From NCBI GenBank assembly GCA_973895155.1, contig OZ316897.1, positions 62,001-126,000 of the forward strand: DNA of 64,000 nt, read 5' to 3'. This stretch comes from Marsupella aquatica (Eukaryota > Plantae > Marchantiophyta). Made by a program: the position numbers and the translations under genes. The notes under the pieces were generated by a model. The model was given only the letters and a program-made list of their open reading frames with translations. It searched no databases and was not told the origin of the DNA. The stretch's first letter is position 1. Each line of letters opens with the position of its first letter. Positions 806-59,948 of the stretch are shown piece after piece.

Positions 806-1450
806 CATCTTAACACTTGCATTTTATGATTGACATGAGGGCATTCCAGCACTCATGTTGCAAGGCAGGGGGCTGTTTCACCTGGATTCAATTATGATAA
901 GAATTACATATAAAAGTAGAAAGGAAGAATTAAATTCACATCCTTTATTGCCTCCTATTATTTTCACCTTCCCATGTACTTGTTTCGTCTATGGTATCAC
1001 ATTGTTTCTGGGGGCGGTGGTGGTTGGAAAAGGTTGGCACATTTTGACACTTGCATTTAACAATTGAGATAAGGGCATTCCGGCACTCATGTTGCAAGGC
1101 AGGGGGCTGTTTGACCCGGAGTCAATCATACAAAAATTATATATAAAAGTAGAAAAAAAAACCAAATTCACATCCTACATTTCCTCCTACTGTTTTCCCT
1201 CTCCTGCTTGTTTCTATTAAGGTATCATATTATTTCTAAAGAAGGAGGGGGGCAGCTCAAAAATGTTAATATATCTTGACACTTACATTTAATGATTGAG
1301 ATGAGGGCATTCCGGCACTCATGTTGCAAGGCAGGGGGCTGTTTGACCCGGACTCAATCATACAAGAATTACATATAAAAGTAGAAAAGAAAAACCAAAT
1401 TCACATTCTACATTTCCTCCTACTATTTTCGCTTTCTTACATATTTCTAT
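806..1450. repeat. Tandem repeat, about 3 copies of a ~235-bp unit
   Basis: GAGGGCATTCC(A/G)GCACTCATGTTGCAAGGCAGGGGGCTGTTT-like core recurs at ~837, ~1071 and ~1304 with similar flanks. Confidence 0.9.
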
Positions 1451-4269
1451 TATAGTTGTAGTTTGCCAGAGAGAACCAAAAGCACACTTTTATGTCTCTA
1501 AACTTTTATGAACCCTAAAGTTCCACTGACCATTTGTCTTATGAATCTATACAACACAGCGGAGTTATATGAATTCACATGGTCCGAGAATTCCCAAGAT
1601 TACAGGGATTTATGAAAATATACATTTTGACTGGGATGACAAAGATTTAGAGTAAAGATCTCTTTATTTTCACACAAAGTGCATTTTGGAATGACATGGG
1701 AGTTTGAAAGTTTAGATGGATATCCTCTACGAATGCATGATTCTTTCAACATCCCATCCGAGCTTACGACTCTTTTTGGTCTTTCTCCGTGGTTTAAAAA
1801 GCAAAAGCCAACGCCCGCTGAATGGCTCCCTTTTTGCTAAAAGGCATTAAAACAGAAGCTCAATTTAGTCAATTGACACATTAGCTGTCCGCTATAAAGT
1901 TGGATTGCACGACATCACAAGTGACGTGTTTACCATGTTTTGGGAGCTACTCCTTCGCAGTAGCTGTCACCTTCTCCCAAGCCTGGTGGGTTGTGTTGTT
2001 GAGAGATCGCTACTACTACAGTACTCGTTCTGTTGACGGACGATCAGCTGGGCCGGAAAGCAAGGAGCGATACAAATCAGACTTCGAGATTTGTAACTCG
2101 ATTCTGACTTCTGTGTCAATTAGTAACATTTGGCAGTACTATCTGCGGGTTTCCTTCTCAAGCTATCACCAATGGAGAAATCGAGTCGTTGGTCAGTCTG
2201 TTTTACTGGACCATTGCACCTTCATTCGCCGGTGCCCCATGATCAGAAACCAGCGTCAATTGTATCAGAATTTGTGAAATCAAGATCTAAAGTGCCTTGG
2301 TCCTCTTAAAGCGACAGGTTGCCAACCAGCTTTCATAGCAGATCGGAAGGAAAAATTGAACTAAGTCTGCCTCACTGAAGGTGCATGTTTATGGATTTTA
2401 CACATCTTGCCTCTACCACTTCTGTTGACATTTTGTCCTAGCTCAGTGACTGAGGTCGACTTGCGATGATATCCAAAACTCTATGTTAAGTATATGCGGA
2501 AAAGAGATAGTCCTATGAATATCTTAAGAACGTCCTTGAACTAAAGGACATGAGGGGCAATTTGACTAAAACTTTGTACAGATCGTTTAGAGTAGGTCCA
2601 TATCAGTGGACATAATTTTACGGCTGGAGTTAGTAGCCACTTGGATTAATACAACACGGCACCTTAGGCATACTCCAAATCCCACCTTGTAATTTTACTG
2701 GAGACCCCAGTTTTGATCTGGTTGACGGCATTTTGTCTACTCAATTGATTCAGAGCCCTACACCAGCTTGCCAATTTGTGATGGCATAAACGAAGGAATT
2801 TTGCGTCCTCATCGGCCGCTGCAGTCTAGCTCGTCTACCAGCAAGACAAGCGCGAACCATACTTACACCAATAGGTTCAGATCCATGATTTAGGAAAATA
2901 ACCTTTTTGGGGAAGCGTTCGCGGAACCAGATGGGACCCGGCCCCGTGCCTATCGATCTCATGAGTGCCTCTGTAATTATTTGCCTTGTTTTGAGCAGTC
3001 ACTTACATAATCGTACTGTCTGGAGTCTCCAGACAAGAAGGTTTGTTTGATTTTTGTCATCGCTGATCCACATCGTGGGTCGTCTCCTCGATTTAGTCGC
3101 GTTTTTGTTATATCTGATTGGCATGTACGTTCCGTTTGTGAGTACGTTCTAGTGAGAATCCTCCTTGTTACTACCTGCTCCAACCACCCTGGATTGCTGT
3201 GCGTCGGTGAGCAGAGTCTTTCTTGTTGCCTCAAAAAAAACCAAAAGAGCTCCATTAAATTAGTCAGCATACAGAAAGGCGGAGCCCCAGAAAAGAGCGC
3301 CAACCCAGGTGGACCGAAGGTCGATGTGCCGGGACCTGTGAAGCAGAGTCTCTTTCGAGCTTCTCCTGTCGGTGGAAAATTCCGAGTCCCAAATCCCAAG
3401 GGTCTAGCCCAGGTCTCTCCTCCAACCTTACTCAACCCCAAAAGTAGATTATCTGGAACAGTGGGATCGCCTCGGTGGATGGGAGGGGTGGGGGGCTCCA
3501 AGATTCCCCTCTGTAGCCTCCCATGGGAGTCTGGGCCATGTCTCAGTGTAGGGGCTGATAAAGAAGGCTCCAAGAGGGTTGGTTTTCTAGAGTTAGAAAG
3601 TCCGTAGCCCCTTGTGTATCCTCAATCAGCCAGCATATTGTCAGATTATTATCAATATATTTCTTTGACCTATCTGCCTATCCAATTGCCATTTTAGTTA
3701 TTGTAATGCTTGATCACATTGGGAGTTGAGCTACAGACAAAAGAATGGAGGCTTCAAGCTGCCCAAAGGGCAACGTGACTCACTGCCCAAAGAAATAGAT
3801 TTCCTTTAATTTGGTCAGATTGTGGCTTTGTTACTTTTTGTCTTCCCACACTTTGCATCCTTTTTTAGTAAAATTGTTGATTTTTGTCAAATTTTGAAGA
3901 GAGAGTGGGTGAGAGAGAAAGAAACAGACGTGGGATTGCGTTGCAACACTGGACAAGCAGATAGGCCAAAGGAATTGACAATAATCTGACAACCCTGGAT
4001 CACCAATGCCTTGGAACTGGCGCAGAATGAGGCATTGGCACCGATGCCTTGGAACTAGCGCACCGGAGAGGCAGATAGGCCAAAGGAATTGACAATAATT
4101 TGACAACCCTGGATCACCGATGCCTTGGAACTAGCGCAGAATGAAGCATTGGCAGCTACCTCTGCGTAGCCCCACCCATGCTCCAAGAAATCTCAATTGC
4201 CCTTTCCCTCATACAATGAGCTGGATGTCACGACTCCAAGGTTCCACTACATCTGACAACGGCATCTTT

Positions 4270-4583
4270 AGTGTCATTACCACTACATCTGTGTTCCTTG
4301 GGGTGATCAAATCTAGTGTCTTGAGTCAAGCGTTTTCCGCTTGTTGTTGATAGTGGGACTTAACAAAGCTCGATCTTACTTAGAATATCCAGAATCATCT
4401 CCACCATTACCTCCCCGTGGCACACCTTATTAAAGCTGCTCTAACCGATCCAGGACTATGACCTTCACATTTGTCATTTTGAGAAAGCAGCAACTGGCAA
4501 TATATAGTTGTTTGCAGCACCTGTGATGTCTGTGGGGGCCAATGAGAAAGAAATCAAAGTTACAACACATTTGTACATGACCA
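4270..4583 (-). pseudogene. COPB1: Coatomer subunit beta (beta-COP) fragment, intronless, multiply frameshifted
   Basis: Three minus-strand frames give VMYKCVVTLISFSLAPTDITGAANNY / [10 protein letters not shown] / NVKVIVLDRLEQL / HGEVMVEMILDIL / RALLSPTINNKRKTLD / LDLITPRNTDVVVMTLK, colinear with plant beta-COP as I recall it ([44 protein letters not shown]...RALSSPNLDIRRKTLD..LDLITPRN). Confidence 0.8.
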
Positions 4584-5039
4584 AGGGGGGCGGAGTCTAG
4601 ACTTGTCACAAGCTCGGACAACGGGAGGTCACTCATGGTTTGGGAGATCATTTAAGATTTGCAATGTTTTAAGATTTGCAATGCAAGACTTTCAGTGCAA
4701 TGGACAATAGATGTTAAATTAGATGTGGCCTTTGTGATACGTTCTTGCCTCTGTGAAAGTATATCATGCTTATTGTCTGGAGATTGTCTCACAAATGTAT
4801 ATCCTTCCTTTTGTCTTTTGCTGTGCCAAAGACTTTTACTGTGCCGAAAACGAAGACCCAAGCTGTACCGAAGACCAAACTGTGCTGAATTCAAGTTTGA
4901 CAACAAATTTCCAGGAGACCAAACTGTGCTGAATTCAAGTTCGACAACAAATTTCCAAGAGGTAAGTACACCATGTCACAAATTGTAACCACTAGAACAT
5001 AAATGTGAAGTACACGGCTTATATAATGAACAAGTCTGC

Positions 5040-5280
5040 ATCGCGACAGTGCTTGTAAACGTTTTTCATGAGTATTACACACCGTCATGGCTACATGCCA
5101 TTGCATTTATGCCCCGGCCCAGATGCACGCAGTCTGGTTGATCCAGTAATGCACGACAGTGCTTGTAGACGTTTTTCACGAGTATTGCGCACCCTCATGG
5201 CTGCATGCCATTGCATTTATGCCCCGGCCCAGATGCACGCAGTCTGGTTGATCCAGTGATGCATTTACGCCCCGGCCTAG
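5040..5280. repeat. Tandem duplication, ~113-bp unit
   Basis: CGACAGTGCTTGTA...TGCCATTGCATTTATGCCCCGGCCCAGATGCACGCAGTCTGGTTGATCCAGT occurs twice. Confidence 0.85.
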
Positions 5281-8200
5281 ACTCCACTATAGCCAGCAGC
5301 CCATGTTCAACCATAACTACGACATCTGGTCAGCTTGGTTAAGCTTTATTCACTATGATCCAGACCTGTGGATTTTCTTTCCACACCAAGGCGAATTTAA
5401 GCAAGTGGACATTTCAATATCACCCACATCCCTAGCCAACCACGTTTTCTCTACTGCTTTCCTGAATGCATGGCCGAGAATAAAAGGAACGTAGACGTCG
5501 CATGGTATCTAAACTTTAGTGTGCACGAGTTTCAGAGTGATGTTTTGGCTTACTGTCATATTCCAGATGGGATGTGCAAGCTACTGTAGTTTCGGAGTTG
5601 TTCTGCAATGATATAACGCTATCATGTGGACAACTTTCTGGAAATTCTAAAGTATTGGAAGTTAGCATCCTTCTGGTTTTCAATGGTTTCTCCCCGTTGC
5701 GCCGAATGTTCAGTTGAAGCTGATGAACATTTTATCCTCTCTCCCTGCGTAGCTAATTTTTGGGTGTTGTCCAGGAAGTGCTTCATCTGGAAAAGAAGTC
5801 TTGCAAATCTTGATTGACTACTTTAGTGTCTGCTACGACCCATTATCGATCCCATGGTTGGTGAAAGCCTGTCTGAAATCATGCGTAATTAATGAAGCCA
5901 ATCGGATTGGCACTGAGCAATCAAATACTCCAATTTGGGCAGAGTTTGGCTTTGAGACTGTACCCAAACTAGCTTGCTGAGCTAGATGCTGAACTACTCC
6001 ACGCCCAATCAAACTCGGCCCCGGTGCCAATAGTACTACACATGCTATCGCATCATACCTAGCATGAAGTCTACACATGCTATCGCATCATACCTAGCAT
6101 GAAGTCAGCTGATCAGATTGTACACACTACACTGCTGGTCAGGGCTCAAATGCGAAAGCGTTATTCCTGCTACTGGGGCCTACAGCAGCCTTAGCTCCTG
6201 CAGCAGATTAACAAAATATGCAGCAGCCGGGGCTGGGGCCAGAGCTGCAGGTCCAACCGCTCCAGTTGTTGAGGCGCCTACAGATCCTGGTTCATTGGGG
6301 TCATTCGGCCCATTACTCCCTTTGTTGCAAATCGACAGGCGCTTCGATATTTTGTTAATCATACCTCAGCGCCTACCCTTGCCCCATCGTCTCTATCTTA
6401 AAGCAAGATGAGCACCCGCATACGACTAATGTCTACCCAACACTCCCTCTTTCTATTTGGCCGCGCCAGCAGCCAGCCATGCATTTGCAGCAAGGTGCAA
6501 ATTGGCATGACCAACACGACACAACAGTATGAAGTATTTCGAGATCAAAATTCTTCTCGAATCTCCAATGTGTAAATGCGCACTGTATACGGGGCAAAAT
6601 ACTTCTCCTTCAATGTCTGTCTAGGTTGTTTCGAGCTGCTGCAGTTGTACTCTTCCCTATAAGCGAGTTCTTGTCATTGGAAATGGAATGTGATTTAGTG
6701 AATGCCTTTTGCATATCAGGGCTAGGGACATCTACGATATTTTCTGTAGATGGCAATAGGAAAACATAGGAAATGATGGTGGATATGTGCTCCTGTGTCG
6801 TAATTGTTTTTGTTTAGCTACAAAATAATGTTCTGGACCTAATTCTGACTTTCTATCTTGGTTTAGAAGATGCTACTGGCTTGGTGGTGCATAAGGATCA
6901 ACGCAATAAACTATCTTCTGCTACAGTTTAGTTCCTGGCCATATCATGATTGTTTATTAAGATTAGTGGAGTCCCTTACCATGTGAGAAAATCAGTCGGT
7001 GCTTTCATCTCCACAACACTATACTGCCATAGCAGCCCACTTATCATCCAAGGTTTCAGATTTCAAGCTGCCTGATTTTGAGGATTACTACTCATTGTGA
7101 ATAAGAGACTCGACGTTTCAGATTAGGTCGATCGTGGTCTGCAAAATGCGGTGAAAACTACTTCTCTCCTCGTCTATAACGTTTGTAATCTAAGTTGAAT
7201 CATTATTACTGGAACTCGGTCACTAGCCAATTTCAGAACAACCTTTCGTGGGCGACTTCTTGCAGTATTATTGATGGACCTATATCTACTCTTCATTGAA
7301 ATTAAGATGTGGGTACGATTCTTGCCTCCTTGAGAACAGATGATATTGCAGGCATTGTGAGAAGTATTGTCTAGATTGAATGAATATCTACTACTCCCCT
7401 AATTCGATTATGCTGGAGGAGGTGCTGCATTCCACAGAGAAGTGTTGATGAATACTGTTATTACTGCGCTTGAATAAATGCTTGCTCTCTCCATTCCCAA
7501 CGGCAAGGTTTATAATTATCAGATATTGTCGGCCTCGGTAAAGTCATTGACCTTCCCCCATTGTGAAGAGAAGATGAGTAAATTCTATCCCCACGCTAGC
7601 TATGTCCTTATGCTCCTCGCTCCTCCACTACTTAGACTGCTACGCAAGTCTTACAAAGCCAGGCCGATGCTGAACAGGGGAATATTTCCCATGCCATAAG
7701 GTCAGCTGCGCCACCACGAACACCTCCCGGAGCCTCCTTCCTCCGACTTCCAATCCCCGAATAAGCACATGCCCTGCCCTGCCTAGGACTTCACTCTCGT
7801 GTCTCAATCGCAGTCATGAGTTCAGCATCATTGGTAATACCTACGGTGGTCCCCTATGGCGCTGCTCTCCTTTGTATTGCGCGTGGGAAGACCGAAATCT
7901 AGCGACATTTTCAAACCATGTATTGTGCAGCCGTTATGAGCAACTCGCATCCTTTGCTCACAAATTAACTGTCTTTCTCTGTCACGCCCACGGTTTTGCT
8001 GCTGAACTTTGCAATTTCAAACACTTCAACGTAGGCCTCTTTAACTTTCTCTGGGCGCTTCAAGGAGATGGATTCCAAACAGCCCTCCACCGGGATATAA
8101 TCACTGAGACTACACTTCAATGCCTACAATGTCACTACGCGCGCCACGAAGCGAAGGAAAGGAATGACGGAAAAAATGTGGCAGAGGCTTGCCTTCAGCT

Positions 8201-9137
8201 CGGAAGCTCTTCACCAACAGCTCAGTCGCACCGACAAATCAAGTGCGAAACCTCTAAGTTGGCCTACATTGAAGTACCTAGGACTTCTGATTGCTGGTCT
8301 CATAGCTCGCAAGGTGCACTGTCAAATTCCCATAACGCCACGTTCGACTGGCTCAGCTTCGCTGTCAAGAACGATGGGCTTAGCCTTCTTAAGGTTGATC
8401 CACTTACGGTGACAATTCTCCGAGGAGAGCTCCTGGTCAAACTCTTGAGTGTCGTCCACCTTGAAGGAACCGGAGCTAACTCCTTTCCAGCTTCCTTTCT
8501 TCAACTGCGCATGGCCAGCCTGCTCTACTTTCAGCTTTCCAGATGCTACTGCGCGTCAGGGAGAGCACTATGGGTTGTGGGTTGGGCAAAGCCTTCCCTC
8601 AAATCCACAATAGTTTTGAATCCCTTTCCACCAGCCGGCTTAGCCCTGCCTCACTGATGTCCCCACCTCGCCAGAAAGCCACATTTTCATCCTTGTAAAG
8701 GGATCGTGCACTTTTGGAAGACCGAAGCCTGACGGGTGCAAGATTGGGGATATCAGCGGAACTAGGGATTCCCCGGAAAACCAGCATCCAGGCAAGGCAT
8801 TCTTCAGTTTCAGCATCCTTTCCTGAGCTTCCAATCCTTGCTGAGAATCAAAGGGCAAGAGGGATTCCAGAGCCCACTCTAGTGTTTGATGCTATGGAAT
8901 GACATCTAATTTTAGGGTCCCTAAACCCTAGTGACATCTATTTGTAGGAAAGAAGTCTTCATTGTTTACAAACTTGATTCATGCTTGTTTCATAGCAGTC
9001 CTTGTATTAATTAAAACATCAATGTGCTCTTAGTTAAGAAAACTACTATTGGGGAATAAATGACCTTGCCATGAGGGTACTCTATTTGGATGGCAGTTTT
9101 TACTGCAAAAGTGAGGAGGTCTGGCTGGGATGGGACA

Positions 9138-9380
9138 TCATTGGGTTTGCGCATTCTTAAGCCATGAATTGCTGACTATTTTGTTCAAGATGACTCCAAA
9201 ATTCAATGAATCCAGTATATACTAGATGGACTAGGTCTATGCAACTAGGATGGGAGACCTTTTAATATTCATTGGGTTTGCACATTCTTAAGCTATGAAT
9301 TGCTGACTAGTTTGTTCAAGATGACTCCAAAATTCAATGAATCTAGTATATACTAGATGGACTAGGTCTATGCAACTAGG
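9138..9380. repeat. Tandem duplication, ~131-bp unit
   Basis: CATTGGGTTTGC...GACTAGGTCTATGCAACTAGG at ~9138-9249 and ~9270-9380. Confidence 0.9.
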
Positions 9381-9874
9381 TTAGGTTTTCTCTTCTGACC
9401 ATGTTGTCATTATTATAACAAAAATTAACAATCTTTATTTAGTCCAATTTTAACTCACAAATTTCCAACCATACTTTAATAACCTATAATTAATTTTTAT
9501 AGATAATTTTTGGTTACATGCATGAATGATCTTAGTGTACACATGATATATGACATTGAAATCAACAATTTATTATGTAACCCTAAGGATTATCATTGCA
9601 ATGACAATAATTCTTTTGAATCCTTTGTATTTTATCTCATTCGTATCCTTGTTTGAAATGGTGTTGCAGAGTTCTTTTGGCTCTTCATGTCAACATAGAA
9701 TCAAGGTGTAGGGTGAGCAATTGTAGTAGTGGATCAGATCTCTCGTGGGCTCACGAACCTGAAGGTAGGGCTGGTGTCCATCCTATACACAGTGACACTT
9801 CCAATTCATTCCAATTACAACAAATATCTTTCCAGCATGTCAACTAAATTGCAATGTCTTATTGATTTGTAGGC

Positions 9875-10555
9875 ATGGCACGTAACAAGCAGAAGGCCAA
9901 GAAGCCTAAGACGGAGGTGAGCAACACACAGGTGTCTTGCACAGATTGTGAGAATTTCTCCAAGAGTCAAGTGTACCAGAAGGCAGCTCATTGTTGTGCC
10001 ATTTGTGATGATGGTGGGGGCTTGGTTATCTGTGATGGCCCATGCACGAGACATTTCCACCTAAACCCTGAGTCTAACCTTGCTGTAGAGAACAATTGTC
10101 CAGGGGTGGGGCTCCCCTCTGCACACAAGGGAGCCTGGATGTGCACTGATTGTGTAGAGAAGCAAGCTAAGTGTGCACAGTGTGGAAAGTTGGGGTCTTA
10201 TGAGACCTTTGCTGATGCCGGACTAGTTGTTAGGAAATGCCCTGACAGATTTTGCATAAGATTTTATTGTTTGTCATGTTTGCCTACTCATGCCACAGTC
10301 TGCCCACTTCATACATGCAAGGCATGTGGTGAGCATGATGATGAGTATTGGACAGACATAGTCCATTGTGTTAGATGTCCCACAATGTGGCATTTTCATT
10401 GTTTGAAGGACCTTCAAGCAGAAGGCTATGCTTGTGACAGAGAAATCTATGATCACTCTGCACATGGCGTTGATCGATGGATCTTTTATTGTCATCGCCA
10501 TCCGATTGATCCTACTTTGCATACTCCTGTCAGAGATCACATATCTTGGCTTTGA
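9875..10555 (+). CDS. Stand-alone EDM2-type composite PHD-finger protein (226 aa), intact
   Basis: CAICDDGG..ICDGPCTRHFH...WMCTDC..KQAKCAQCGKLGS...KC...C.RFYC..C...CPLHTCKAC...HCVRCPTMWH..CL...FYCHRHPID..L.TPVRDHI follows the EDM2 PHD region including the TPVRDH end. Basic NLS-like N-terminus. AG acceptor-like site just before the ATG. Confidence 0.85.
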   Translation: MARNKQKAKKPKTEVSNTQVSCTDCENFSKSQVYQKAAHCCAICDDGGGLVICDGPCTRHFHLNPESNLAVENNCPGVGLPSAHKGAWMCTDCVEKQAKCAQCGKLGSYETFADAGLVVRKCPDRFCIRFYCLSCLPTHATVCPLHTCKACGEHDDEYWTDIVHCVRCPTMWHFHCLKDLQAEGYACDREIYDHSAHGVDRWIFYCHRHPIDPTLHTPVRDHISWL

Positions 10556-10956
10556 AGCTGAACGAAGTGGGTTGGTACAGTGCCCCTAATGTGGATGTAT
10601 TGTTTGGAGATTACAGAGAGTTCATTTTTGATGAGAAGGGCCATTGAAATATTAGGCAGCAGTTATCTTGTGCTTACATGTGGCTAGGTACATGCCACTA
10701 AAAACTTACCTTAAGCCTTCCATGATCTCTTCAGACTGAGCAATCATTTTGAAAATTAATAAAATTATAAACTTATTGTTATGTGTCTATGAAGTATAAG
10801 GCTTTTTTAACGGATGACAAATTCTTCGTTTGTATAAATTCTTGATTCTGATTCAATGGGTAGTCCTTCATTTATAACATACTTCATATGTATTATCACA
10901 AAACAATACTCAAGACACTATCTCCTTTTTGTATTCTGTGCAGTATCATTCATATC

Positions 10957-11070
10957 AACATTTGTACAATATTGAAGCCAGACCCAAGAAAAGAAGTGAC
11001 AACTGCTTTCGACAACATTTGTACAATATTGAAGCCAGACCCAAGAAAAGAAGTGACAACTGCTTTCGAC
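10957..11070. repeat. 57-bp perfect tandem duplication upstream of the TET/JBP-like gene
   Basis: AACATTTGTACAATATTGAAGCCAGACCCAAGAAAAGAAGTGACAACTGCTTTCGAC x2. Confidence 0.9.
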
Positions 11071-11089
11071 AAATCAGTACTTTGGGAAG

Positions 11090-11268
11090 GTGAGTACCTA
11101 AACATCAAATTTATTTCTTTCTGTCCTCCTAAATCTTAAATGGTTCATAAATCCAATGATAAAAGTTACAACTTACGGCATTTTGGTACTCAGATCTTAA
11201 ATGGTTCGTGTACTATTTGACCGGAATTGTAATTTTTACTAAATAAATTATTTGTTCTTACATGGCAG
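11090..11268 (+). other. Predicted 5'-UTR spliceosomal intron of the TET/JBP-like gene
   Basis: Donor AAG|GTGAGT at 11089/11090; T-rich tract and GCAG|ATG acceptor abutting the start codon. The upstream exon has an in-frame stop, so it is likely UTR. Confidence 0.6.
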
Positions 11269-12633
11269 ATGGGAAAAAGAAAGCATAATACTTTAAGAAA
11301 AAAAGAATTGGGGGAAGATTTTTCTGTGGATGTATTTGCTACAGTGTGGGAAGACCTCAAAAAATTAGATACCGTAAAATTGAAGTTTGCACTTCATTGG
11401 ATTCTATGTCATGACAACATTCTTGAACTTTTTGTTAAAAAAGTTCTTAGCCTAGAGTCTTCAAGATTTTCAAGAACACTATTCTTGAATGGGTATCAAA
11501 ATTGTAGAAGCCATATCATTCAGATCTTTCCTCCTGAGGTGTTCATTGAAATTGATGATATCTTTTTTCATCATGGTTTCAGACTAAAATTACCTCAACC
11601 TTTGAAAAAATCAATTACTATGTTTTCTAATCTTGACATTAGAAAGCTTAAACTTTTTCAAAAAGAAAGAGATAATCTTTGTAGAAATGGAGGAACTTAT
11701 GCTAAAGTTGAAGTAGACGTTCAACGTATTTCCTCTTCAAAACTAAAAACACTTACTGGTGTAATTTTAGGTGATTGGGATCAAACTACAACAACATTTA
11801 CCTCTGATCCAAACTTTATTTTCTTAAAATTTCCATCAGACCTCATTATCGTAGAAGAAAAGAAAGGATTTACCTATCTTTTTGATAGGTCTGGAGTCAA
11901 ACCATATTTGATAGCAATGATATTCCATCAAGATATCCTATCACCTGATTCAATGGTCTTCATTCGAAGATTATTAGAACAATTACATGCTGCCCATCAT
12001 GTTATCCAAAGAGGGAAAGGAAAAAGATCATGGGAAAGTAAGATGACAGGGTTTGGTCCTTTTCATAATCCTTACAAAAAAGATCAAAGTTGTGTATCTT
12101 TTTATACTCATGAACAAAAGATAAAGACATTCTTCAATCAAGATTGTCCCGATGCAGCCAATTTTGAAGACATGGTAGATAAATATTCTCATCGAGAGTT
12201 AATCGACATTATTCTTGGACTCTACATGTGGTTATGTCCACAAATGTTAGACAGCTTTTTAGATTATTCTCATCCTTACTTATGTTCAAATGATTATAAG
12301 ATGAACATATTTGAGAAAGCACTAAAATGTAAAGGTCCTAGTGCTTATCAATTATATATTAGTAAAGATTATTGTGTAGAAACTCATGCTGATCATGATA
12401 CAGCAGAATTTACTTTATGTTATGTTAGTCATCCTGATACCAAGATTTCTCCTGGAAACTTTGTTATTCCAGAGTATGGAATATTATTACCTATTAGAGA
12501 TGGTAATTTATTTTCATTTCGTAGTGACATTATCCATGGTACAGGATATAGAATTCCAACATCAAATTCTATATATGTAGGAGCTATTACCATAAACAAA
12601 AAATTAGATAGACTTTTACAAAGAAAACATTAA
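11269..12633 (+). CDS. TET/JBP-like 2-oxoglutarate/Fe(II) dioxygenase (454 aa), intact
   Basis: HxD (ETHADHD, His at 12385), GNFVIPEYGILLPIRDGNLFSFRSDIIHGT with distal His at 12535, upstream RG...KMTGFG motif. This spacing is typical of TET/JBP DSBH domains. The canonical C-terminal 2OG-binding Arg is not obvious. ORF is markedly AT-rich. Confidence 0.75.
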   Translation: MGKRKHNTLRKKELGEDFSVDVFATVWEDLKKLDTVKLKFALHWILCHDNILELFVKKVLSLESSRFSRTLFLNGYQNCRSHIIQIFPPEVFIEIDDIFFHHGFRLKLPQPLKKSITMFSNLDIRKLKLFQKERDNLCRNGGTYAKVEVDVQRISSSKLKTLTGVILGDWDQTTTTFTSDPNFIFLKFPSDLIIVEEKKGFTYLFDRSGVKPYLIAMIFHQDILSPDSMVFIRRLLEQLHAAHHVIQRGKGKRSWESKMTGFGPFHNPYKKDQSCVSFYTHEQKIKTFFNQDCPDAANFEDMVDKYSHRELIDIILGLYMWLCPQMLDSFLDYSHPYLCSNDYKMNIFEKALKCKGPSAYQLYISKDYCVETHADHDTAEFTLCYVSHPDTKISPGNFVIPEYGILLPIRDGNLFSFRSDIIHGTGYRIPTSNSIYVGAITINKKLDRLLQRKH

Positions 12634-13566
12634 TAAAAAAGTAAATATATTATTTGTATTTATCATTATTTTTTATTACTTTGAACAAGTTAAAGTATGG
12701 ATTCTTTAATTTAAGGAATATAGGATCATAGGAAAATGTGTAAGAGTATGAATCATGGCATCTTATGCTAGGAGTGGAAAAACCCGAGGGTTAAGAGGAG
12801 ATGATGGTCCAACAAAGAAAAGCTTCTTCAAGAGGAGGAGGTGAAAAGGACCTAGACAGTAGTGAAAGTAGGAATCTCAATGTCAAGTGGATAGTTTTCC
12901 TCAACATATCATACATCTCCCTTAAGTTCTTACAGAACCTTGAAAGGCCTATAAATACATCATCCATTTTGACACTCCCATCCACTACTAGGTGATTTAT
13001 CTTGGAGAATAGAATGGGAGTGGTATTCTTGACCAAGTATTCATCATGTTGGACCCTAGATATATCATTCATTTCATGATAATGAGCTTTAGAACCAATT
13101 TTCTAGAGGCAACTCCAAGGCTAGTTAGGACCTGATAGGCACAGTACCAATCCTAATATTTCTTCAAACCAAGTAAATGGTTTTTTTTCTTTCAAAAAAC
13201 CAATAGAAACCCATGGGAAGGGGGGCCCAACAGGGCAACAAAAACCGAAGCAGTAAAATGCAAACTTGGTGAGACCAAAGGAGTCCAAAGGTGCGAGGGC
13301 TCAAAAGGAGGGAACAAGGTAGGAAAAAACACTAGTCAAAGGAAAATCCTGTAAGCTATGACTGTTTCAACTAGAAAGCTATGCATCCGAACGAGTAATC
13401 CACCTAAGACGTTCCTTACTCACCAACTCTTTGACTCTTAATAATCTAGTATGTTTTCTACTAGGACCCGAGGCCTCATAAAGGCCATGCAAGGCATCCA
13501 ATATTTCTGAAAGGAGGAGATTCAAGTTGAACCTTCTACTTGTCGTATAGCAATAAGTATCAAAAG

Positions 13567-14864: not shown

Positions 14865-15233
14865 TCAAAAATCTTCTGGCTTGGGAATCCAAGTGGTACT
14901 CAAGACCATTGATGGAATATGGTTGTCATTGGGGTTCACAACATAAAAATCAAGGTCATAAAATTCTTCTCCAATTTGTAATGGCACTTGTTTTACTCTT
15001 CCCCAAAGTGAAATTAATCGTCCATCGATTGAGATTTGAGCACATATGGGCTGAACGTGTTGGAGAACTAATTGATGAAACAGTTTGTGGGACAGTAAAT
15101 TTATTCCAGAGCCTGGGTCAATAACAAAGTGCTGAATAGTGTGTCCTTCCAATTTAATCTCCCCTTCAAGAGAATACTGAAATGCGCAGGAGAGAAAATC
15201 ACAGCAATCCATAGTAGCTTTTACGGTCCACAT
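14865..15233 (-). CDS. Retropepsin-like aspartic protease domain
   Basis: FVIDPGSGINLLS active-site-like motif, GRVKQVPLQIG...LDFYVV...MVLSTTW (variant of xILGxxW). Confidence 0.65.
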   Translation of the reverse strand: MWTVKATMDCCDFLSCAFQYSLEGEIKLEGHTIQHFVIDPGSGINLLSHKLFHQLVLQHVQPICAQISIDGRLISLWGRVKQVPLQIGEEFYDLDFYVVNPNDNHIPSMVLSTTWIPKPEDF

Positions 15234-15342
15234 GATGACTCAAACAGAATAAGTGCTCCTCAGTGCTTCAATCAGGTCCATTCATACTCCAGGGAATAAA
15301 CGCCCCTTCAAATCTTATATACATGAAGACGTTGCAAATCTG

Positions 15343-17820
15343 CTATCTACTCAACAACCCTTGAGTAACAACGTCCGGCCACGAAGGAGGAGTAGGTAAC
15401 CTTACTAGTCTCCTAAGTGACTTATACCCTTGAGCAGAAGAGTTCATAGCCTTATTCCGTATCAACTGTTCTCGTAGCTTAACAAGCTCTTTCTCGTACT
15501 TATGCGGAACAGCATACCCTTCATGGCAGACCCAAACAGAGTATTGGTATGGCCAAGGAAACTCTGGAGTTATTGGCGGAAAAGGAGCTTCAGCACGTCG
15601 GAGGACATATACCCAACACCAAATTTCATATTCCAAACATTTATATCTTCTACCCTTATCAATGGGAGGAATAGCCTTACCCGGCTTATAAGTGGGAATC
15701 AACATTCGAATACTCGGTAGATACGTACCAGGTAAAATCTGTTGTTGTTGATGTATACTCTCCATTTCCAGATGTCGGAAAGCTATCCGAAAATCATTCT
15801 TCTCCCACTTATGAATTGAAGCAAGGTTAGGTATAGGAATTAGGGATGGTAGTACCACTGTGTGCCCAAGTTTGGGAGGTACTCTGATAATACGAGGATC
15901 TTCGTCTTCCTCTCCATCGCTTGGAGCTCCTTTCCAACGAAAAATAATGTCTGGGTTTGAAGAAGGTATCACCGACTCCTTAGTAGGCCAACGTGATAGT
16001 ACAACAGGAGATGAAGATGCAGGAGGTGGAGAAGAATTCCCCATTGTCGTGTTGATGGGCTTCAGCTGCTCAAAATCTGGTGAATTTGCTTCATGAAAGA
16101 TCTGTTGATTTCTTACACGACGCAACCTTTTCCCAGGTCTTCGAGTATATGTCACTTGAAATTGCTCCGTAATAAGTGAACTCTCATCTCCAAGTGATAT
16201 CCGAGTACCCTTATCTCTGCTTGAATCCAGTAAGATAGAAGCTGATGCAGAGCTAAATGCCAAATCAGGTGTTCCAGACAGAGGTATGGGTGGAGATACA
16301 CTCTTGGTCTCAGGTAGCCCTAAATTGCTTGAAGGTCCAAGAGATGGAGTGGTCTGTAGACTGTGTTGAGACTCAAGTAATCTCTCTTCTGGAAGGTAAG
16401 CTGGAGAAACCCAATCAACAGATGGGTGTGGAGGAGGCCCTTTTCTCGCCAATGCTTCTGCTAACTCCTCAGACATAATCAGAGCAACTGTTATCCTGGT
16501 TTCGGGGGTCGGCCACATAGGAAATGGCATGACAAAATTAGGTGAAGTTGGTTGTCCAGCTACTCCTTCTACATCTACTATTTCGTCCTCTGAATCAGCC
16601 TTAAACAACTTTACAAGCTCCGGGCATAGTACCGCCAGAGGTTCCATTGATTGTTGTACAAGAGGAACCACATCTAGGTTTGGGGAGGGACTACGAGAAT
16701 CTTCCGAATTATACTCCTGTAAAGCTTTTAAAGCATTATTACTCACTTCCATGGGTGGTGAAGCAGGGTTCTGTGAAGTTTTATCATACCCATCCGCTGC
16801 AGTAGTATATTGTTGAGGAGGTTCTCCTGGTAAGCTTTCTTCATCCACATCCATCCTGTCTTCGTCATTCGCTCTGAAAGCAAAATTGTCCTGATCAAGA
16901 TCTTGATCCTCTGATGGGTGGGAAAGAATTGGCTCGTCTCTCCCGCCAACTGGTTCTCTTGTCTCTTTCAGTCTCCGAACTTCATTTACCAGCTCAGATT
17001 CTTCGCAAGTGAGTAGTTCGCATAACGCCACCAGTGTTGAATTGGATCGGACTTCTCGTACTTCCGGCAACTCATTTGCTTCACAGGTAGATGCGCTCCA
17101 ATGGGTACGATAGAAGACTTTCTCTGAAAGGAGCAGACATTTATGCTTGTGATAAATGTGAGCTAGATAGGGAGTCAAGTTGGTAAATCTCAACTTTCCA
17201 GCTTGCAACCTGCTATGAAAGTTCTTTACCTGGGTATGAATTACCCTATATAAGATCTTCGTCCAATTGATGGTCTGCTTCTGTTCTAATGAAGAGATAA
17301 CGGTGGCAGCGAAAGAAAGAGTAATACGTGTCTGACTCTCTGGATAGAAAATTGGTGATAGAAATCGAAAAAGATGCTGCAAAGAGGTAACTAAACAGTC
17401 CGTGGTTACCCAACCATTTCGCCTCTTAAAGGATTCAGGAGCAAAGAAAGACTCTATATAAGCTCGGGGCTCTCCATCAATCCTCTCCAAATCCTCGCCC
17501 GTTGTCGGCGTCGAGTAGACTCCCGCTATGAGCGCTTCAGTCCAAACACTTGGACGCGAGCGGACACCGATTCCTTCCTCAGCGTCCCACACACCTTGGT
17601 CGATGAGGCTGAACTCACACATCCTCCAAGGGAAACGAAGTAATTTCTTCAAGCCCATCAATGCAAGATTCGTCCTCAATTGTCGGCGGTCCACCATATT
17701 CGACGGGATAATTGCGAGTATTGGTCGCGTCGTAAGTTTGGACTCCACCATCGTGTCAATCATAAAGGACGCTTCTCTTGCCGTTCCTAGAAGTGGACGC
17801 TTCTTGCAGCGTCCCGTCAA
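15343..17820 (-). CDS. Gypsy extra ORF (825 aa): PMD/Transposase_32-like N-terminus plus long Pro/Ser-rich region
   Basis: Intact long ORF downstream of pol. GLKKLLRFPW...WTEALIAGVYSTP..G...NGW...C...LFRFLSPIFYP...INWTKIL...LTPYLAHIY pattern. Confidence 0.65.
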   Translation of the reverse strand: MTGRCKKRPLLGTAREASFMIDTMVESKLTTRPILAIIPSNMVDRRQLRTNLALMGLKKLLRFPWRMCEFSLIDQGVWDAEEGIGVRSRPSVWTEALIAGVYSTPTTGEDLERIDGEPRAYIESFFAPESFKRRNGWVTTDCLVTSLQHLFRFLSPIFYPESQTRITLSFAATVISSLEQKQTINWTKILYRVIHTQVKNFHSRLQAGKLRFTNLTPYLAHIYHKHKCLLLSEKVFYRTHWSASTCEANELPEVREVRSNSTLVALCELLTCEESELVNEVRRLKETREPVGGRDEPILSHPSEDQDLDQDNFAFRANDEDRMDVDEESLPGEPPQQYTTAADGYDKTSQNPASPPMEVSNNALKALQEYNSEDSRSPSPNLDVVPLVQQSMEPLAVLCPELVKLFKADSEDEIVDVEGVAGQPTSPNFVMPFPMWPTPETRITVALIMSEELAEALARKGPPPHPSVDWVSPAYLPEERLLESQHSLQTTPSLGPSSNLGLPETKSVSPPIPLSGTPDLAFSSASASILLDSSRDKGTRISLGDESSLITEQFQVTYTRRPGKRLRRVRNQQIFHEANSPDFEQLKPINTTMGNSSPPPASSSPVVLSRWPTKESVIPSSNPDIIFRWKGAPSDGEEDEDPRIIRVPPKLGHTVVLPSLIPIPNLASIHKWEKNDFRIAFRHLEMESIHQQQQILPGTYLPSIRMLIPTYKPGKAIPPIDKGRRYKCLEYEIWCWVYVLRRAEAPFPPITPEFPWPYQYSVWVCHEGYAVPHKYEKELVKLREQLIRNKAMNSSAQGYKSLRRLVRLPTPPSWPDVVTQGLLSR

Positions 17821-17970: not shown

Positions 17971-19283
17971 CTAAATAGGAGACTCATGATATCGCTTAAC
18001 CCAGAATCCATTGATTCGGGTGTCAAGTGGGTGACCGTCTAAGGTAGTCAAGGAAACCGAACCGTTAGCCCAGATTTGGGCAACTCAATAAGGACCAATC
18101 CAATGGGTATGGAGTTTCCCAGGAAATAACATATAACAGGAATCAAAGACTAATGCTAAATCACCAACATCTAAATTCACGACTCGCAGCTTTTGATCAT
18201 AAACAAGCTTACGCTTGTTCTGAATTGTAGCTGTATGGTCTAACGCTAAAAGTCTAACTTCTTCTAATTTGACAATATCATAAAACCTATGTGGGAGACT
18301 AGCCGCTGGAGAGAGACGGTTGGATACCAAGAGTCGTTCTGTCGGGAAGGAGAATTCAATAGGAATAATACTGTCTAGGCCATAAGTCGGGTAGAAGGGA
18401 GTGTGAAGGGTTGTAATTTTCTCGGTAGTACGGTAAGCCCATAATGCAGAATGTAACTTCACATCCCAGTCTGTCTTGTGAGACTCTACTATCTTATTCA
18501 GGATCTTGCCCACAATGCCATTAGCTCTTTCCGTTAAGCCATTAGCTCTGGGTTTGTAAGGAGTAGTTTTGCGATGCTTGATAAGATATGTGTTAGTAAT
18601 TAACTCAATAGTTGAGTTAAGAAAATGCAAACCCCTATCGCTTACCAACTCCAAAGGACACCCGAACCGAGTAATAATGTGCTCAAAGAGAAATGCAGCC
18701 GTTGTTGTAGCATCATTCTTGCGAGTGGCTTTAGCCTCCACCCATTTGGTGGCATAATCAGTGGCCAAAATAATGTATTTACTTCGGCTTTTTCGAGCTG
18801 TTGGTGAAATTGGGCCAATAAAATCAATACCCCATTTCTCAAATGGTGTCAAAGGCAGGATGGGCGTAAGAGGCCATTTGGAACTAGCAGTGGGTTTCCC
18901 TATTCTTTGACAGGGGTCACACGTCTTAATAAAGTTGTAAGTATCTCTATGCATGGTAGGCCACCAGTACCCATCATCCAAAATTATCTTTACAGTAGTA
19001 TTGACAGCACAATGGCCACGTGTTTCACCAGAATGTAAAGCTTCAATTACTTGTGGGAGTTCCCTGTTCTCCAGACATCGTCGCATCTTCTGATCAGGAC
19101 CTTGTTTAAACAAAGTGCCCTGAAGGATAGTATAAGGTCCCACCTTATGTGCAAAAACAGCTCGTTCTTCCGCATTAAGGCCTTCAGGAAAACTACCATG
19201 AATCAACATGTGCACAATATCAAAATACCGTGAAGACTCTCCTTCAATGTGCCACAAATGCTCATCTGGGAATTCATCAGAAA
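17971..19283 (-). pseudogene. Gypsy pol C-terminus: integrase (HHCC, D,D35E, GPY/F) with one in-frame stop at 18085
   Basis: H(SGETRG)H...GYWWPTM...CDPCQ, WGIDFIGP, VSDRG, NGLTERAN, KLHTHWIGPY*; frame continues to TAG at 17971. Confidence 0.95.
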
Positions 19284-22900: not shown

Positions 22901-23657
22901 CTTCCTCCTGGTTTGCCTCCTCTCGCTCCTCTGAATCGCTATCCTGCAAGGAGATTATTGTGACCGCGGTTGTGATCCTATCGGCAGTGAGGGCGTGGTC
23001 CATCACTACGCTTAATACATATGCACAAATTGACGGAAACAATGGTAGCCCCTTCCTGGTTATAACACTTGCAAGGTTGCGCTTCCATATCAGCAATGGG
23101 TGAAGAGTTCCATCTAATACTCTCTTGGCAACTGATAGTTGCTCTGGCGTTACATAATGGTACCCACTCTTGAGGATTACCCATTTAGTAAAGAACTCCA
23201 CATACTTGCGGACCTCTTGGTTTGTCATAACGCCATATTGGACCTTCTTCTCATGCTGGAGCTCTCCTCCTTGTTTTAGGAAGGCACTCATCTCTCTTCC
23301 CGTAAGTGCCTCAATTGGATAGTCAGCTGGTAGGCTGTCTGGGGCGAAAATCCCAAACAAAGTCGCTAATTCCTTGTTGGGGATGCGGTAGGCTTGTGCT
23401 CTGTATGTGATAAACACTCCAGTATCTGCAAAATTGACATCCACAATATCTTTGTAAAGCTGACAAGCACGATCAATTGATACAAACCTATCAATTCGGA
23501 CAAGCCCATAGCATCGAGCCCTTTCAAATATCTCTCTGTATTCTTCAATGAAAGCCACCTCAGAGATTGAGTTCCTCAATCTTTCTTCTGGAGTTGATCG
23601 AGGTTGTTTATTTTTGGCTGGAGGGACCTCTACTCGGGTTTGATTTGGAGATGTCAT
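19920..23657 (-). pseudogene. ~1245-codon ORF split by one TAG (21789): PMD/Transposase_32-like domain, acidic/basic linker, coiled coil, then ~620-aa unknown globular region
   Basis: ORFs 21789-23657 and 19920-21782 are in the same frame, separated only by the stop plus two codons (GEIA*RELVQC). No introns apparent. Confidence 0.7.
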
Positions 23658-32586: not shown

Positions 32587-33765
32587 ATGTACAAATATTG
32601 AGGCGAGACCAAGGAAAGAACTGTACACTCCTTGGGACAAATCAATAGTAGATTTATGAAGGTGAGTACCTTAACATCAAAATCCCCCCTTTCTTCCCAC
32701 CTAGTACATGTAAAATATTCATAAATCTAATGATAAAAATTACAACTTACAACTGCATTTCGGTACTCAGATCTGAAATGGTTCGTGTACTATTTGACCA
32801 GAATTATAATTTTTACTGAATTAGAATTAAAATCTTGAAAAAATTTATGTGGATTTGTTTGCTATAGTGTGGGAAGATCTAAAAAAATTGACACCATAAA
32901 ATTGAAGTTTACACTTTATTGGATTCTTTATTATGAAATATTCTTGAACTTTTAGTTAGAAAAGTTCTTAAACTAAAGTCCTCAAGGTTTTGAAGGACAC
33001 TGTTTTTGAATGGCTATCAAAGATGTCACCTTTTGGATGTGGTTACAATTATCCCTATTTTCATTGCTCCCCGTGTGAATGAGGGTACTCTTATCTCCTG
33101 AGGGTACCCTTGTGCTTGAGGGTACTCTTATCAGTGAGGGTACTCTTATCAGCGAGGGTACTCTTATCAATGGGTACGCTTATCAATAATGGTACTTTGA
33201 TCAATAAGGGTACCCTTATCAATGAGGATACTCTTATCTCCTGAGGGTACCCTTGCGTATGAGGGTACTCTTATCAATGAGGGTACTCTTATATCAGCAA
33301 GAGTACTCTTATCAATGAGGATACTCTTATATCAGCAAGAGTACTCTTATCAATTAATGGGTACACTTATCAACAATGGTACTTTGATAATGAGGGTACC
33401 CTTATCAGTGAGGGTATTCTTATCTCCTAAGGGTACCCTTGCGTTGGGCCTTGTGCATGAGGGTACTCTTATTAATGAGGGTAATTTTATTAGTCATAGC
33501 AAGCAACAAAGCAGGCAGGGAACCCCATGAAGGCGCCCCGCACCGGCAGAAGGACTCCGAACATACTGAAAAGACCCTAAACCTCACTAGACCAACATTT
33601 TGGGTATTGCATGGACAAATACTAGCCGAAGTACATGCCTAAATTTACCTGCTCTGTTTTAGTTCCCTAAACCAGGGGTGATTTTTTTCATCAAATCCAT
33701 ACATTGTATCCTAGTTTTTTTCACACATGATGTAAACCTACATAATGTGAAAGTGGGAGAGAAGA
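32587..33765 (+). repeat. Long direct repeat copy 1 (TET 5' remnant + GAGGGTACTCTTAT minisatellite + conserved tail)
   Basis: Highly similar to 40827-42160 from TGTACAAATATTGAGGCGAGACC to GTGGGAGAGAAGA. Confidence 0.92.
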
Positions 33766-38898: not shown

Positions 38899-40773
38899 CC
38901 TGCATGAAAAACAACAAAATTAGCTGATGCCATATTTTGCTCTGAAATTATATAGAGCTCTTCACATCAGATTTTCCCGTGGAGCTCCACAATGGACTCT
39001 GAAGCCAATCTCAATTGGCCAACTATCCTAGTATTTTTCATTTTCCATTACCTATGTCCCAAGCTTGATCTGCACCATGAATGTGCAATGTAACCCAAAG
39101 CTTCACTGACATAGAAGTTGGTTGAGCATGTTCACACATTCAACGTACTTTGTGAGCACAGACACAAATTAAACGAATTCAATCCGAATCTTCTCCAAAA
39201 CCTGGTCAGTTGGATCATATTTTCACTATCTTGGGAAGTGAACTTGTACCATGCACTCTCTCGATGCCCTTGGGGCTAATAATTACTCCAATGCCTCTAA
39301 AGCCACCAAACTAATTAATAAAGCCCAAGAACTTATGCCATGGTAATTAGTGACACTATACGGTATATATTGTCATTCCATATGATAATAAATCACATAC
39401 TATTATTCATTGTACAGTCTATGTTCTTATATTTTGATGTGCTATTACTAGGACACTGAGAACTTATACATACCACGTACATACCCTAAAAAATTAAACT
39501 TAGAATGATAGAGCCTTGTGTATACATACTGCATCTAATGCCTAGTTGCAATGAAATAAATAATTCTACTTCAGGATATATTATTTATGTGTGTAGGACC
39601 CCCTAAATGTTTTCACTGGTAGTAAAGTAATCATTAAACTGTTAAACCCTTTCAAGGTATTATAAACACTTAATGAACACTCAACTATTATTTGATTCCT
39701 ACCCAGAACAATCTTTATGGTACAACCTCTCGCCAAGTTATTGAGTATCCACCAGGCTACAAGTAGTCAATTCAGATTGGCGGCAGAAGAATAATCATTT
39801 TGCCTTGAGTAACTCTGAAGTGTGATTCGTTTATGCCTGGTTTGGCCTTGATTTGTCATCCGTCACATCTGGTCATCCCGCCCCTATCCTGACACCGTCC
39901 CAACCTCATCCCAACCCTATCCCAACCCCACCCGGTCCCAACCACACCCCGTAGGGCAACATGTAAACTTGCCCGTTAACTCAAACCGGGCATTTATCCC
40001 ACACAAAGATCATCCAACCCCAGGGGCAAGTGAATAATCATTATGCATGGAGTAACTGTGGAGTGTGACTCATTTCTGCCAAGGGAAGATCATCCAAACC
40101 CAAGGGAACACAGTACATTGAAAATGGTCAGAACATTGAACTACACAAACAAAGAGGGAGCTCGACCTGTACTTGCTCTAGGTTGGTCTCCTAGTGGTGT
40201 TGGCTATGCTGACGAGGAAGAAGCCTGAAGCAAGCTGCCTCTCTCCAGCCACAATTCCAGGATCCTGAAAATTAAGCTTAGTTCACACCCTGACTTGGGC
40301 GTATGGCCAGGTTGACATTTTCCCTCCCTATCATTCTTATTGTTAGGAGAACAGGATTGACAGTTTTGAAGTAAATTCTGGTGTATTATCCTTTCCTTTT
40401 AATTAGTAGATATTTAAAAAACAGAAGGGTTTGCAGAATTGATCACAAAGGACATGGTTACATTTCATTATATTGAGTTTATGATGGTTTTATTACATAA
40501 ACCCTAATTTTGCTTTGAACTTTTTATTGAATACTCCACGTTTCTCAGATTGCACAAGGGGACCTGGTTGACATTGGGATGACTTTGTGAGTGCAAAATC
40601 TACTTCCGTTAGTAGTTGGGAAGCTATCCGCCCTCTTTCACAAGATATTGCCTTACAGTTCATTCAAAAGTAAGTTGGCTTCAAGCACTATTGTTGCCAA
40701 TGATATGAAGCTCTATATGCACTTGGAGAAATGAGTTTCAGTTTCAGGTTTCTTGTCATTGTTTTTGGTCATC

Positions 40774-42160
40774 CTCAAGACACTAAATCCTTTTAGTGTT
40801 CTGTGCAGTGTCATTCATGCCAACATTGTACAAATATTGAGGCGAGACCAAGGAAAAAACTGTACACTCCTTGGGACAAATCAATAGTAGATTTATGAAG
40901 GTGAGTACCTTAACATCAAAATTCCCCCTTTCTTCCCACCTACATGTTGAATTATTCATAAATCTAATGATAAAAATTACAACTTACGGCATTTCGGTAC
41001 TCAGATCTAAAATGGTTCGTGTACTATTTGACCGGAATTGTAATTTTTACTGAATTGGAATTAAAAGAAAAAAAATTCAGTGGATTTGTTTGCTACATTG
41101 TGGGAAGATCTAAAAAAATTGACATCATAAAATTGAAGTTTACACTTTATTGGATTCTTTGTTATGAAAACATTCAAGTTGAACTTTTAGTTAGAAAAGT
41201 TCTTAAACTAAAGTCCTCAAGGTTTTGAAGGACAGTGTTTTCGAATGGCTATCAAAGATGTCACCTTTTGGACGTGGTTACAATTATCCCTATTTTCATT
41301 GCTCCCCGTGTGAATGGGGGTACTCTTATCTCCTGAGGCTACCCTTGTGCTTGAGGGTACTCTTATCAGTGAGGATACTCTTATTTCCTGAGGGTACCCT
41401 TGCGTATGAGGGTACTCTTATCAATGAGGGTACTCTTATATCAGCAAGAGTACTCTTATCAATGGGTACGCTTATCAATAATGGTACTTTGATCAACGAG
41501 GGTACCCTTATCAATGAGGATACTCTTATTTCCTGAGGGTACCCTTGCGTATGAGGGTACTCTTATCAATGAGGGTACTCTTATATCAGCAAGAGTACTC
41601 TTATCAATGGGTACGCTTATCAATAATGGTACTTTGATCAACGATGGTACCCTTATCAATGAGGATACTCTTATTTCCTGAGGGTACCCTTGCGTATGAG
41701 GGTACTCTTATCAATGAGGGTACTCTTATATCAGCAAGAGTACTCTTATCAATGGGTACGCTTATCAACAATGGTACTTTGATAATGAGGGTACCCTTAT
41801 TAGTGAGGGTATTCTTATCTCGTAAGGGTACCCTTGTGTTGGGCCTTGTGCACGAGGGTACTCTTATTAATGAGGGTACTTTTATTACTCATAGCAAGCA
41901 ACAAAGCGGGCAGGGAACCCCATGAAGGCGCCCCACGCCGGCAGAAGGACTCCGAACGTACTGAAAAGACCCTAAACCTCACGAGACCAACATTTTGGGT
42001 ATTGCATGGACAAATACTGGCCAAAGTACATGCCTAAATTTACCTGCTCTGTTTTAGTTCCCTAAACCAGGGGTGATTTTTTTTATCAAATCCATACGTT
42101 GTATCCTAGTTTTTTTCACACATGATGTAAACCTACATCATGTGAAAGTGGGAGAGAAGA
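40774..42160 (+). repeat. Long direct repeat copy 2 (shared part 40827-42160), with expanded 133-bp higher-order minisatellite
   Basis: Matches copy 1. Its 5' ~480 bp aligns to ~10908-11500 (TET 5' exon, intron and start of CDS, translating KLKFTLYWILCYENI...LLVRKVLKLKSSRF versus KLKFALHWILCHDNILELFVKKVLSLESSRF). Confidence 0.92.
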
Positions 42161-59921: not shown

Positions 59922-59948
59922 AGGGTTTAGGGTTTAGGGTTATAACCC
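59922..59948 (+). repeat. Short interstitial plant telomeric tract ending in a palindrome
   Basis: AGGGTTTAGGGTTTAGGGTTATAACCC. Confidence 0.8.

Follow-up and report, generated by a model that had tools for sequence, protein, structure and literature searches.

A very divergent TET/JBP-fold dioxygenase-like gene beside an EDM2/NSD-type PHD gene in a liverwort: probably two independent neighbours

TET enzymes, which oxidise methylated DNA, are not known from land plants. A gene for a putative relative of these enzymes is described here from the liverwort Marsupella aquatica, in a 64-kb window of contig OZ316897.1 (the whole stretch of DNA that was analysed; all coordinates are window positions). 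Two uninterrupted and co-oriented open reading frames (ORFs), 713 bp apart on the (+) strand, encode a PHD protein of 226 aa and a TET-like protein of 454 aa (Table 1). In a preliminary description of the window, the pair had been read as a mobile two-gene system. The ORFs and their spacing were recovered exactly as described there, and each coding sequence lies within one exon. The reading preferred here differs: the PHD and TET-like genes are probably two independent neighbours and not a mobile module, and the TET-like protein would have an atypical co-substrate pocket.

In the canonical TETs, 2-oxoglutarate (2OG) is held by two strictly conserved arginines, R1261 and R1896 in TET2 and R224 and R289 in the Naegleria enzyme NgTET1 (PMC7854593). 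TET2 R1896 and NgTET1 R289 bind the C5 carboxylate of 2OG (PMC7854593). An N-terminal Arg, R1261 in TET2 and R244 in CMD1, binds the C1 carboxylate and stacks on the base. CMD1, the TET homologue of Chlamydomonas that modifies 5-methylcytosine (5mC), has no functional C5-carboxylate Arg; it cannot use 2OG and uses vitamin C instead (PMC7854593). Fungal TET/JBP genes often ride on DNA transposons (PMC12730594). On the side of the PHD proteins, EDM2 is described as an H3K9me2-binding protein whose atypical PHD fingers number two and a half (PMC7529245), and PHD cassettes of the EDM2/NSD1 type end in a C4HC2H signature (PMC3776765).

The 454-aa ORF is a real gene. Two proteins of 447-449 aa align with it end to end (34-36% identity; E 1e-92 and 1e-80) and 47 matches, mostly fragments, were found among 1.84 billion representative proteins, so that a chance ORF can be dismissed. 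The gene is under purifying selection, the proportion of nonsynonymous differences (pN) being ~0.43 vs a saturated synonymous proportion (pS) of ~0.82. Its relatives are missing from the annotated databases. A profile search of 5.8 billion proteins gave no annotated relatives, a metagenome scan with the close TET subfamily found nothing, and none of the ten family members that were checked (all full-length ones included) has an NCBI or UniRef record; their source is the raw assemblies of Logan, ENA and JGI. The gene would belong to a small family with intron-free coding sequence, for which unannotated raw assemblies are so far the only source. The closest relative lies on the contig L003 (667-1680), with 76% identity over the intact N-terminal 213 residues and 63% over the full tblastn match. 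The frame of this copy is lost after about residue 213 and regained ~75 codons later, in a frameshifted copy or through contig errors.

At the level of sequence the family can hardly be connected to known dioxygenases. A Pfam search with the 454-aa protein gave nothing at E<=1, hence no match to Tet_JBP (PF12851) or PF20515 that would reach the gathering cut-off. Among the relatives, sub-threshold matches recur for PF20515 alone (4 of 23 members, in the correct, co-linear register). One faint match to Tet_JBP (E 0.13) is likewise in register, and the best score of any relative is E 0.0014, at 19 bits vs a cut-off of 27. No real match was obtained among the PDB sequences, either by phmmer or by profile searches; a match to USP16 (E 4e-4, 70 helical residues) was treated as chance. 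The Atlas neighbours of the protein are fungal clusters carrying PF20515, and no fungal relatives were retrieved in the sequence searches, those of 1.84 and 5.8 billion proteins included.

The assignment to the TET/JBP fold comes from structure prediction. A single-sequence AlphaFold model was unusable, with a predicted local distance difference test (pLDDT) score of 37. The model built from a 23-sequence family alignment reached a pLDDT of 80.3 and a predicted TM-score (pTM) of 0.84. In this model an N-terminal helical domain (residues ~1-140) precedes a double-stranded beta-helix core (~190-454). The N-terminal ~130 residues (residues 1-140, encoded at 11269-11690) are helical, with pLDDT 76-95, and family-conserved; they are covered by no structure match. 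With Foldseek, the best matches were CMD1 (3.8e-7), the fungal CcTet (2e-6) and TET2 (1.4e-5), followed by anthocyanidin synthase, FTO and NgTET1, and the top 20 consisted of CMD1, CcTet and TET2 entries. VIA-align, an aligner independent of Foldseek, was run against 48,161 representative chains. It placed TET2 first (Z 14.5, 246 residues aligned), then NgTET1 (13.3), CcTet (13.1) and CMD1 (13.1); the TET-family chains aligned over 214-253 residues and AlkB came next (Z 11.4, 171 aligned). In a second look all of the top 16 chains were of the TET family (Z 12.9-14.6, 213-260 aligned), with AlkB at 12.0 or below and ~167 aligned. Among viral structures (BFVD), annotated JBP1/TET-domain proteins were found in the top matches. 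The preliminary description had called the protein TET/JBP-like and had named AlkB, prolyl hydroxylases (P4H) or small-molecule oxygenases as the best hits that would speak against it. Instead, TET2, CMD1, CcTet and NgTET1 outrank AlkB and P4H with both aligners, and the predicted fold supports a very divergent TET/JBP-fold relative.

The active site divides into a conserved and an altered part. In the family alignment, the iron triad H373-x-D375...H423 is essentially invariant (H373 in 32/32, D375 in 32/33 and H423 in 26/26 members), which bears out the HxD...H motif noted earlier, and D377 is present in 31 of 33 members. R248, found in 19 of 20 members, stands 125 residues before H373, compared with a similar spacing of 121 for the N-terminal Arg of TET2. 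The last-strand Arg, in contrast to this, is missing. It aligns with Ile435, and position 435 holds Ala, Val, Ile, Thr or Ser in 21 of 24 members; the Arg (R-x-T) is kept only in three distant ones (P0040, P0046 and P0048). The earlier caveat that no 2OG-binding Arg follows the distal His is thus correct, and it holds for most of the family. Since the C5-carboxylate Arg of the last strand is absent, the co-substrate pocket would be atypical. From H423 to K444 the chain has a single basic residue, R428 (conserved in 17 of 24 members); together with R248 and K366 it is among the conserved candidates that may bind 2OG.

Like CMD1 (PDB 7cy4-7cy8), its best Foldseek match and one of the top VIA-align matches, the TET-like protein contains the HxD...H triad, comes from the green lineage and has no working Arg for the C5 carboxylate of 2OG. 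Unlike CMD1, to which it is only 13-16% identical and with which no match is seen at the sequence level, it has a different N-terminal domain, and it has no Arg at all at the position where CMD1 carries one that points away. The fungal TET/JBP dioxygenases (PF20515, 2OG-FeII_Oxy_6; CcTet, 7vpn/8jkk) match its fold with Z 13.1-13.8 over 253-260 residues, and, like theirs, its family is multi-copy and set in DNA rich in transposable elements. However, no member of the liverwort protein's family reaches the Pfam threshold and no transposase is linked to the gene at this locus. Animal TET2 and NgTET1 have the same core and iron triad, with VIA-align Z-scores of 14.5-14.6 (the highest) and 13.3-13.6, respectively. 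Unlike these two, the 454-aa protein lacks the second 2OG-binding Arg as well as Cys-rich or CXXC domains.

On this basis, the TET-like protein would most likely bind Fe(II) via H373, D375 and H423 and oxidise a base flipped out of DNA or another nucleic acid; 5-methylcytosine and thymine would be the likeliest substrates. Given the absent last-strand Arg, it may bind 2OG in another way or, as CMD1 does, use another co-substrate. Alternatively, the protein could have the fold and not the function, being a 2OG-independent or inactive derivative, or having RNA, a protein or a small molecule as its substrate in place of DNA bases. The missing canonical C5-carboxylate Arg, the absence of any Pfam family at threshold, the modest TM-scores from Foldseek (0.33-0.41) and the Z-scores of 10-12 that AlkB, FTO and P4H still attain would all agree with this. 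Nevertheless, long-term purifying selection has kept the iron triad and D377 almost without variation, the TET-family chains exceed AlkB by ~80 aligned residues and take the first ranks every time, and CMD1 modifies 5mC in DNA without a functional C5 Arg by using another co-substrate (PMC7854593). A loss of the function is for these reasons considered rather unlikely, although it is the most serious of the alternatives.

The neighbouring 226-aa ORF is not a chance ORF either, because it has four relatives of near-equal length (220-245 aa, 44-80% identity, with a conserved stop) in which all Cys/His zinc ligands are invariant, the last of them being C206-x-x-H209. Three Pfam models, PHD-1st_NSD (39-93), PHD_NSD (96-140) and PHDvar_NSD (148-179), match the protein in the NSD order, all of them below the gathering cut-offs. 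It aligns with residues 639-794 of NSD2 (E 2e-5), and in the Atlas it lies closest to a cluster of NSD-like PHD proteins from Streptophyta (0.92). The gene is under purifying selection, with a ratio of nonsynonymous to synonymous substitution rates (dN/dS) of 0.19 against L006, the closest PHD contig. A candidate AG acceptor is found at 9871-9872, directly 5' of its ATG.

As in EDM2 and NSD1-3, the order of the three modules is PHD-1st_NSD, PHD_NSD, PHDvar_NSD, and as in EDM2 and NSD1 the last unit ends in Cys-x-x-His. The earlier call of an EDM2-type PHD protein consequently holds at the level of domains (NSD-order modules, NSD2 alignment and a C4HC2H-like end), for which 'EDM2/NSD-type PHD cassette' appears a fair label. 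Unlike EDM2, the protein consists entirely of the PHD cassette and is devoid of the ELP methyltransferase-like, PGR and Pro-rich domains; unlike NSD1-3, it has no SET domain. It is presumably a histone-tail reader. At 9138-9380, 0.5 kb upstream of the gene, a 131-bp unit is repeated 1.9 times (96% identical), with one 18-nt palindrome, ATCTAGTATATACTAGAT, per copy.

The two genes differ in abundance. Summed contig depth was followed over 9300-13300 (4,001 letters) in contigs of several sequencing runs, of which X1 covers the segment best. The PHD exon (9970-10640) stands at 10-400x its flanks (in X1: 1200-8100 vs ~100 for the flanks and the TET-like gene) and is many-copy, although summed contig depth is indicative only and not a true copy number. 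The TET-like gene is at flank level in X1 (~100) and at ~10-20x flank level in the runs of a second organism; in the runs that cover the segment best it is about single-copy. The spacer 10774-11041 is at baseline depth. In a metagenome scan for the PHD gene, one additional contig (L007) was obtained.

The homologies of the two genes likewise have separate boundaries. The similarity of the PHD unit to L006 ends at 10755, and that of the TET copies (two fragments within the window, and L003) begins at 10906-11013. The DNA upstream of the L003 copy matches window positions 40446-41048 and not the PHD-TET spacer. The TET unit thus has an upstream region of its own, which is common to copies without a PHD gene.

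Linkage of the two genes is not conserved elsewhere. A PHD profile gave no match on the six TET-bearing contigs (L001-3 and L008-10; positive controls 249-426 bits), of which only three reach far enough upstream (1.5-2.3 kb) to show a PHD gene at the spacing of the window. Neither was a PHD gene found upstream of the two extra TET 5' fragments in the window, nor a TET-like coding sequence on the four PHD-bearing contigs (L004-7). On two of the latter, the PHD gene has a BRCT gene downstream instead. In L004 the ORFs after the PHD gene encode a tandem-BRCT protein (BRCT_2, 6.9e-7) and an F-box-like one, and the end of the contig shows a weak Transposase-associated domain (E 0.031). The ORF downstream of the PHD gene on L005 is homologous to the L004 BRCT ORF (E 9e-8), which points to a PHD-BRCT pair that is conserved between loci and may be carried by a transposon. 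In the window itself no trace of the L004/L005 BRCT ORF was found. The PHD gene would accordingly be a many-copy, selected and stand-alone cassette whose companion in related loci is a BRCT gene, perhaps also a transposase, and not a TET-like gene.

These observations bear directly on the mobile two-gene system of the preliminary description, where the PHD protein would locate silenced chromatin and the oxygenase would protect the element by modifying 5mC. The transposon-borne TET/JBP genes of fungi (PMC12730594) and the TET 5' fragments within the repeats around the helicase gene of the window speak in its favour. However, neither terminal inverted repeats nor long direct (terminal) repeats enclosing the pair were found, the best CACTA-type terminal pair around the locus (16/28) falls inside the chance distribution, and no transposase ORF was matched within 1-15.3 kb. 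Genes that can be recognised as parts of a mobile element first occur from ~14.9 kb onward, namely the protease and integrase of a long terminal repeat (LTR) retrotransposon. With unequal depth, separate homology boundaries, a spacer at baseline and no linkage of the genes in any other copy examined (a check that the preliminary description had itself set), the mobile element is largely refuted and now seems very improbable. A CACTA association of the PHD gene or of the pair was also considered and rejected: convincing termini and a nearby transposase were lacking, and the sole point in its support was the Transposase-associated domain of L004.

A non-mobile, co-opted pair deserves somewhat more weight. 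Here, the PHD protein would read a heterochromatin mark in subtelomeric chromatin and there recruit or license the TET-like enzyme; a segmental duplication would then have copied the pair. Both genes are intact, co-oriented, selected and only 713 bp apart, and the N-termini of both proteins, which would presumably be nuclear, are basic and resemble nuclear localisation signals. In run X1, moreover, alternative letters at about half depth are found along the entire stretch 9300-13300, flanks included. This suggests a second copy (~98-99% identical) or haplotype of the whole segment in the source organism, and the extension into the flanks fits a duplication of the whole segment rather than the transposition of a two-gene unit. 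Against co-option, the linkage is conserved in no other contig examined, the conserved neighbour of the PHD family is a BRCT gene, and the TET unit has its own conserved upstream region and a 5' intron in common with copies that lack the PHD gene. A co-opted pair is thus judged unlikely.

Several points also weigh against two independent neighbours. Only a small number of contigs, all short, allow an informative comparison. Those TET contigs that extend far upstream carry distant paralogues (19-28% identity), and the closest one, L003, reaches just 666 bp upstream. The summed contig depth, as said, is not a true copy number.

The intron in question is a predicted one in the 5' untranslated region (UTR) of the TET-like gene, directly before its ATG. 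It had been proposed in the preliminary description and appears plausible: the donor (GTGAGTA) stands at 11090 and the acceptor (CAG) ends at 11268, and the whole 179-nt stretch is conserved in L003, with the similarity gone further upstream. No splice joint was seen at this position in the aligned contigs, and no listed run is recorded as RNA. Directly 5' of the donor lies a perfect 57-bp tandem duplication. It appears to be recent and specific to this locus, because the alignment with the remaining TET copies does not start before the second unit.

Table 1. Features of the PHD-TET locus, TET-derived repeats of the window and related PHD loci (positions without a contig name are window positions).
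Feature	Position	Strand	Basis or remark
PHD repeat unit	9823..10755	+	blastn: 79% to the related contig L006; flanks on either side without alignment
Coding sequence, stand-alone NSD/EDM2-type triple-PHD protein, 226 aa	9875..10555	+	ORF, Pfam models, relatives
Upstream part of TET unit, presumed promoter and 5' exon	10906..11089	+	blastn; common to the window copy from 40771 onward
Perfect 57-bp tandem duplication, 2.1 copies, directly 5' of intron donor	10956..11072	+	
Predicted 179-nt 5'-UTR intron, GTGAGTA...GGCAG	11090..11268	+	ends directly before ATG
Coding sequence, TET/JBP-fold Fe(II) dioxygenase-like protein, 454 aa	11269..12633	+	ORF, relatives, alignment-based model
Direct repeat, first ~440 bp a decayed TET 5' unit (codons ~16-88)	32588..33765	+	blastn; no PHD upstream
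Second repeat copy (40827-42160) with upstream 40446-40821 matching the L003 TET upstream	40446..42160	+	no PHD upstream
PHD-then-BRCT order	L004:1911-5471; L005:232-1891		two distant loci

The two TET-derived repeats of the window (32588-33765 and 40827-42160) are direct, 1.2-1.3 kb long and 83% identical. The first ~440-490 bp of each correspond to a decayed TET upstream region, the 5' intron and the first ~80 codons. Between them lie a DEAD/RecQ-type helicase ORF (34133-37894) and an ORF with an OrsD domain (37810-38898), both on the (-) strand. The preliminary description had the neighbours of the pair mostly carrying stops or frameshifts. This is true in a loose sense only, since long intact ORFs, such as that of the 1253-aa helicase, occur in the window as well. 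Four further long ORFs of 529-825 aa, all (-), have no Pfam match at E<=0.001 (15343-17820, 19920-21782, 21789-23657 and 29231-30820); near them are a Ty3-type integrase (18085-19257) and the remnant of an aspartic protease (14868-15239). A back-to-back telomere-like motif, TTTTAGGGTCCCTAAACCCTAG, is found at ~8912-8935 and a (TTTAGGG)2 unit at 59926-59939. These motifs are repeats of the plant telomere type and are consistent with a subtelomeric location; both genes are set in transposon-rich, probably subtelomeric DNA.

A more far-reaching scenario can be formulated for the family. The clade has lost the C5-carboxylate Arg, whereas its iron centre is retained under selection; its enzymes may work with a co-substrate different from 2OG (compare vitamin C in CMD1) and write a new base modification in the subtelomeric heterochromatin of liverworts, perhaps guided by the PHD protein at this locus and at one duplicate. 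Taken as a whole this is speculative, and it is regarded as slightly less likely even than the co-opted pair.

The idea of a reader-eraser transposon should not be carried forward on the present evidence. What remains noteworthy is the dioxygenase: a selected TET/JBP-fold family that is missing from the annotated databases and whose pocket would be unlike that of the canonical TETs. In the searchable literature, no paper was found that joins TET/JBP enzymes with liverworts or land plants. The presence of an intact and selected family of this predicted fold in a plant genome would make it a testable question whether some bryophytes oxidise or hypermodify 5mC.

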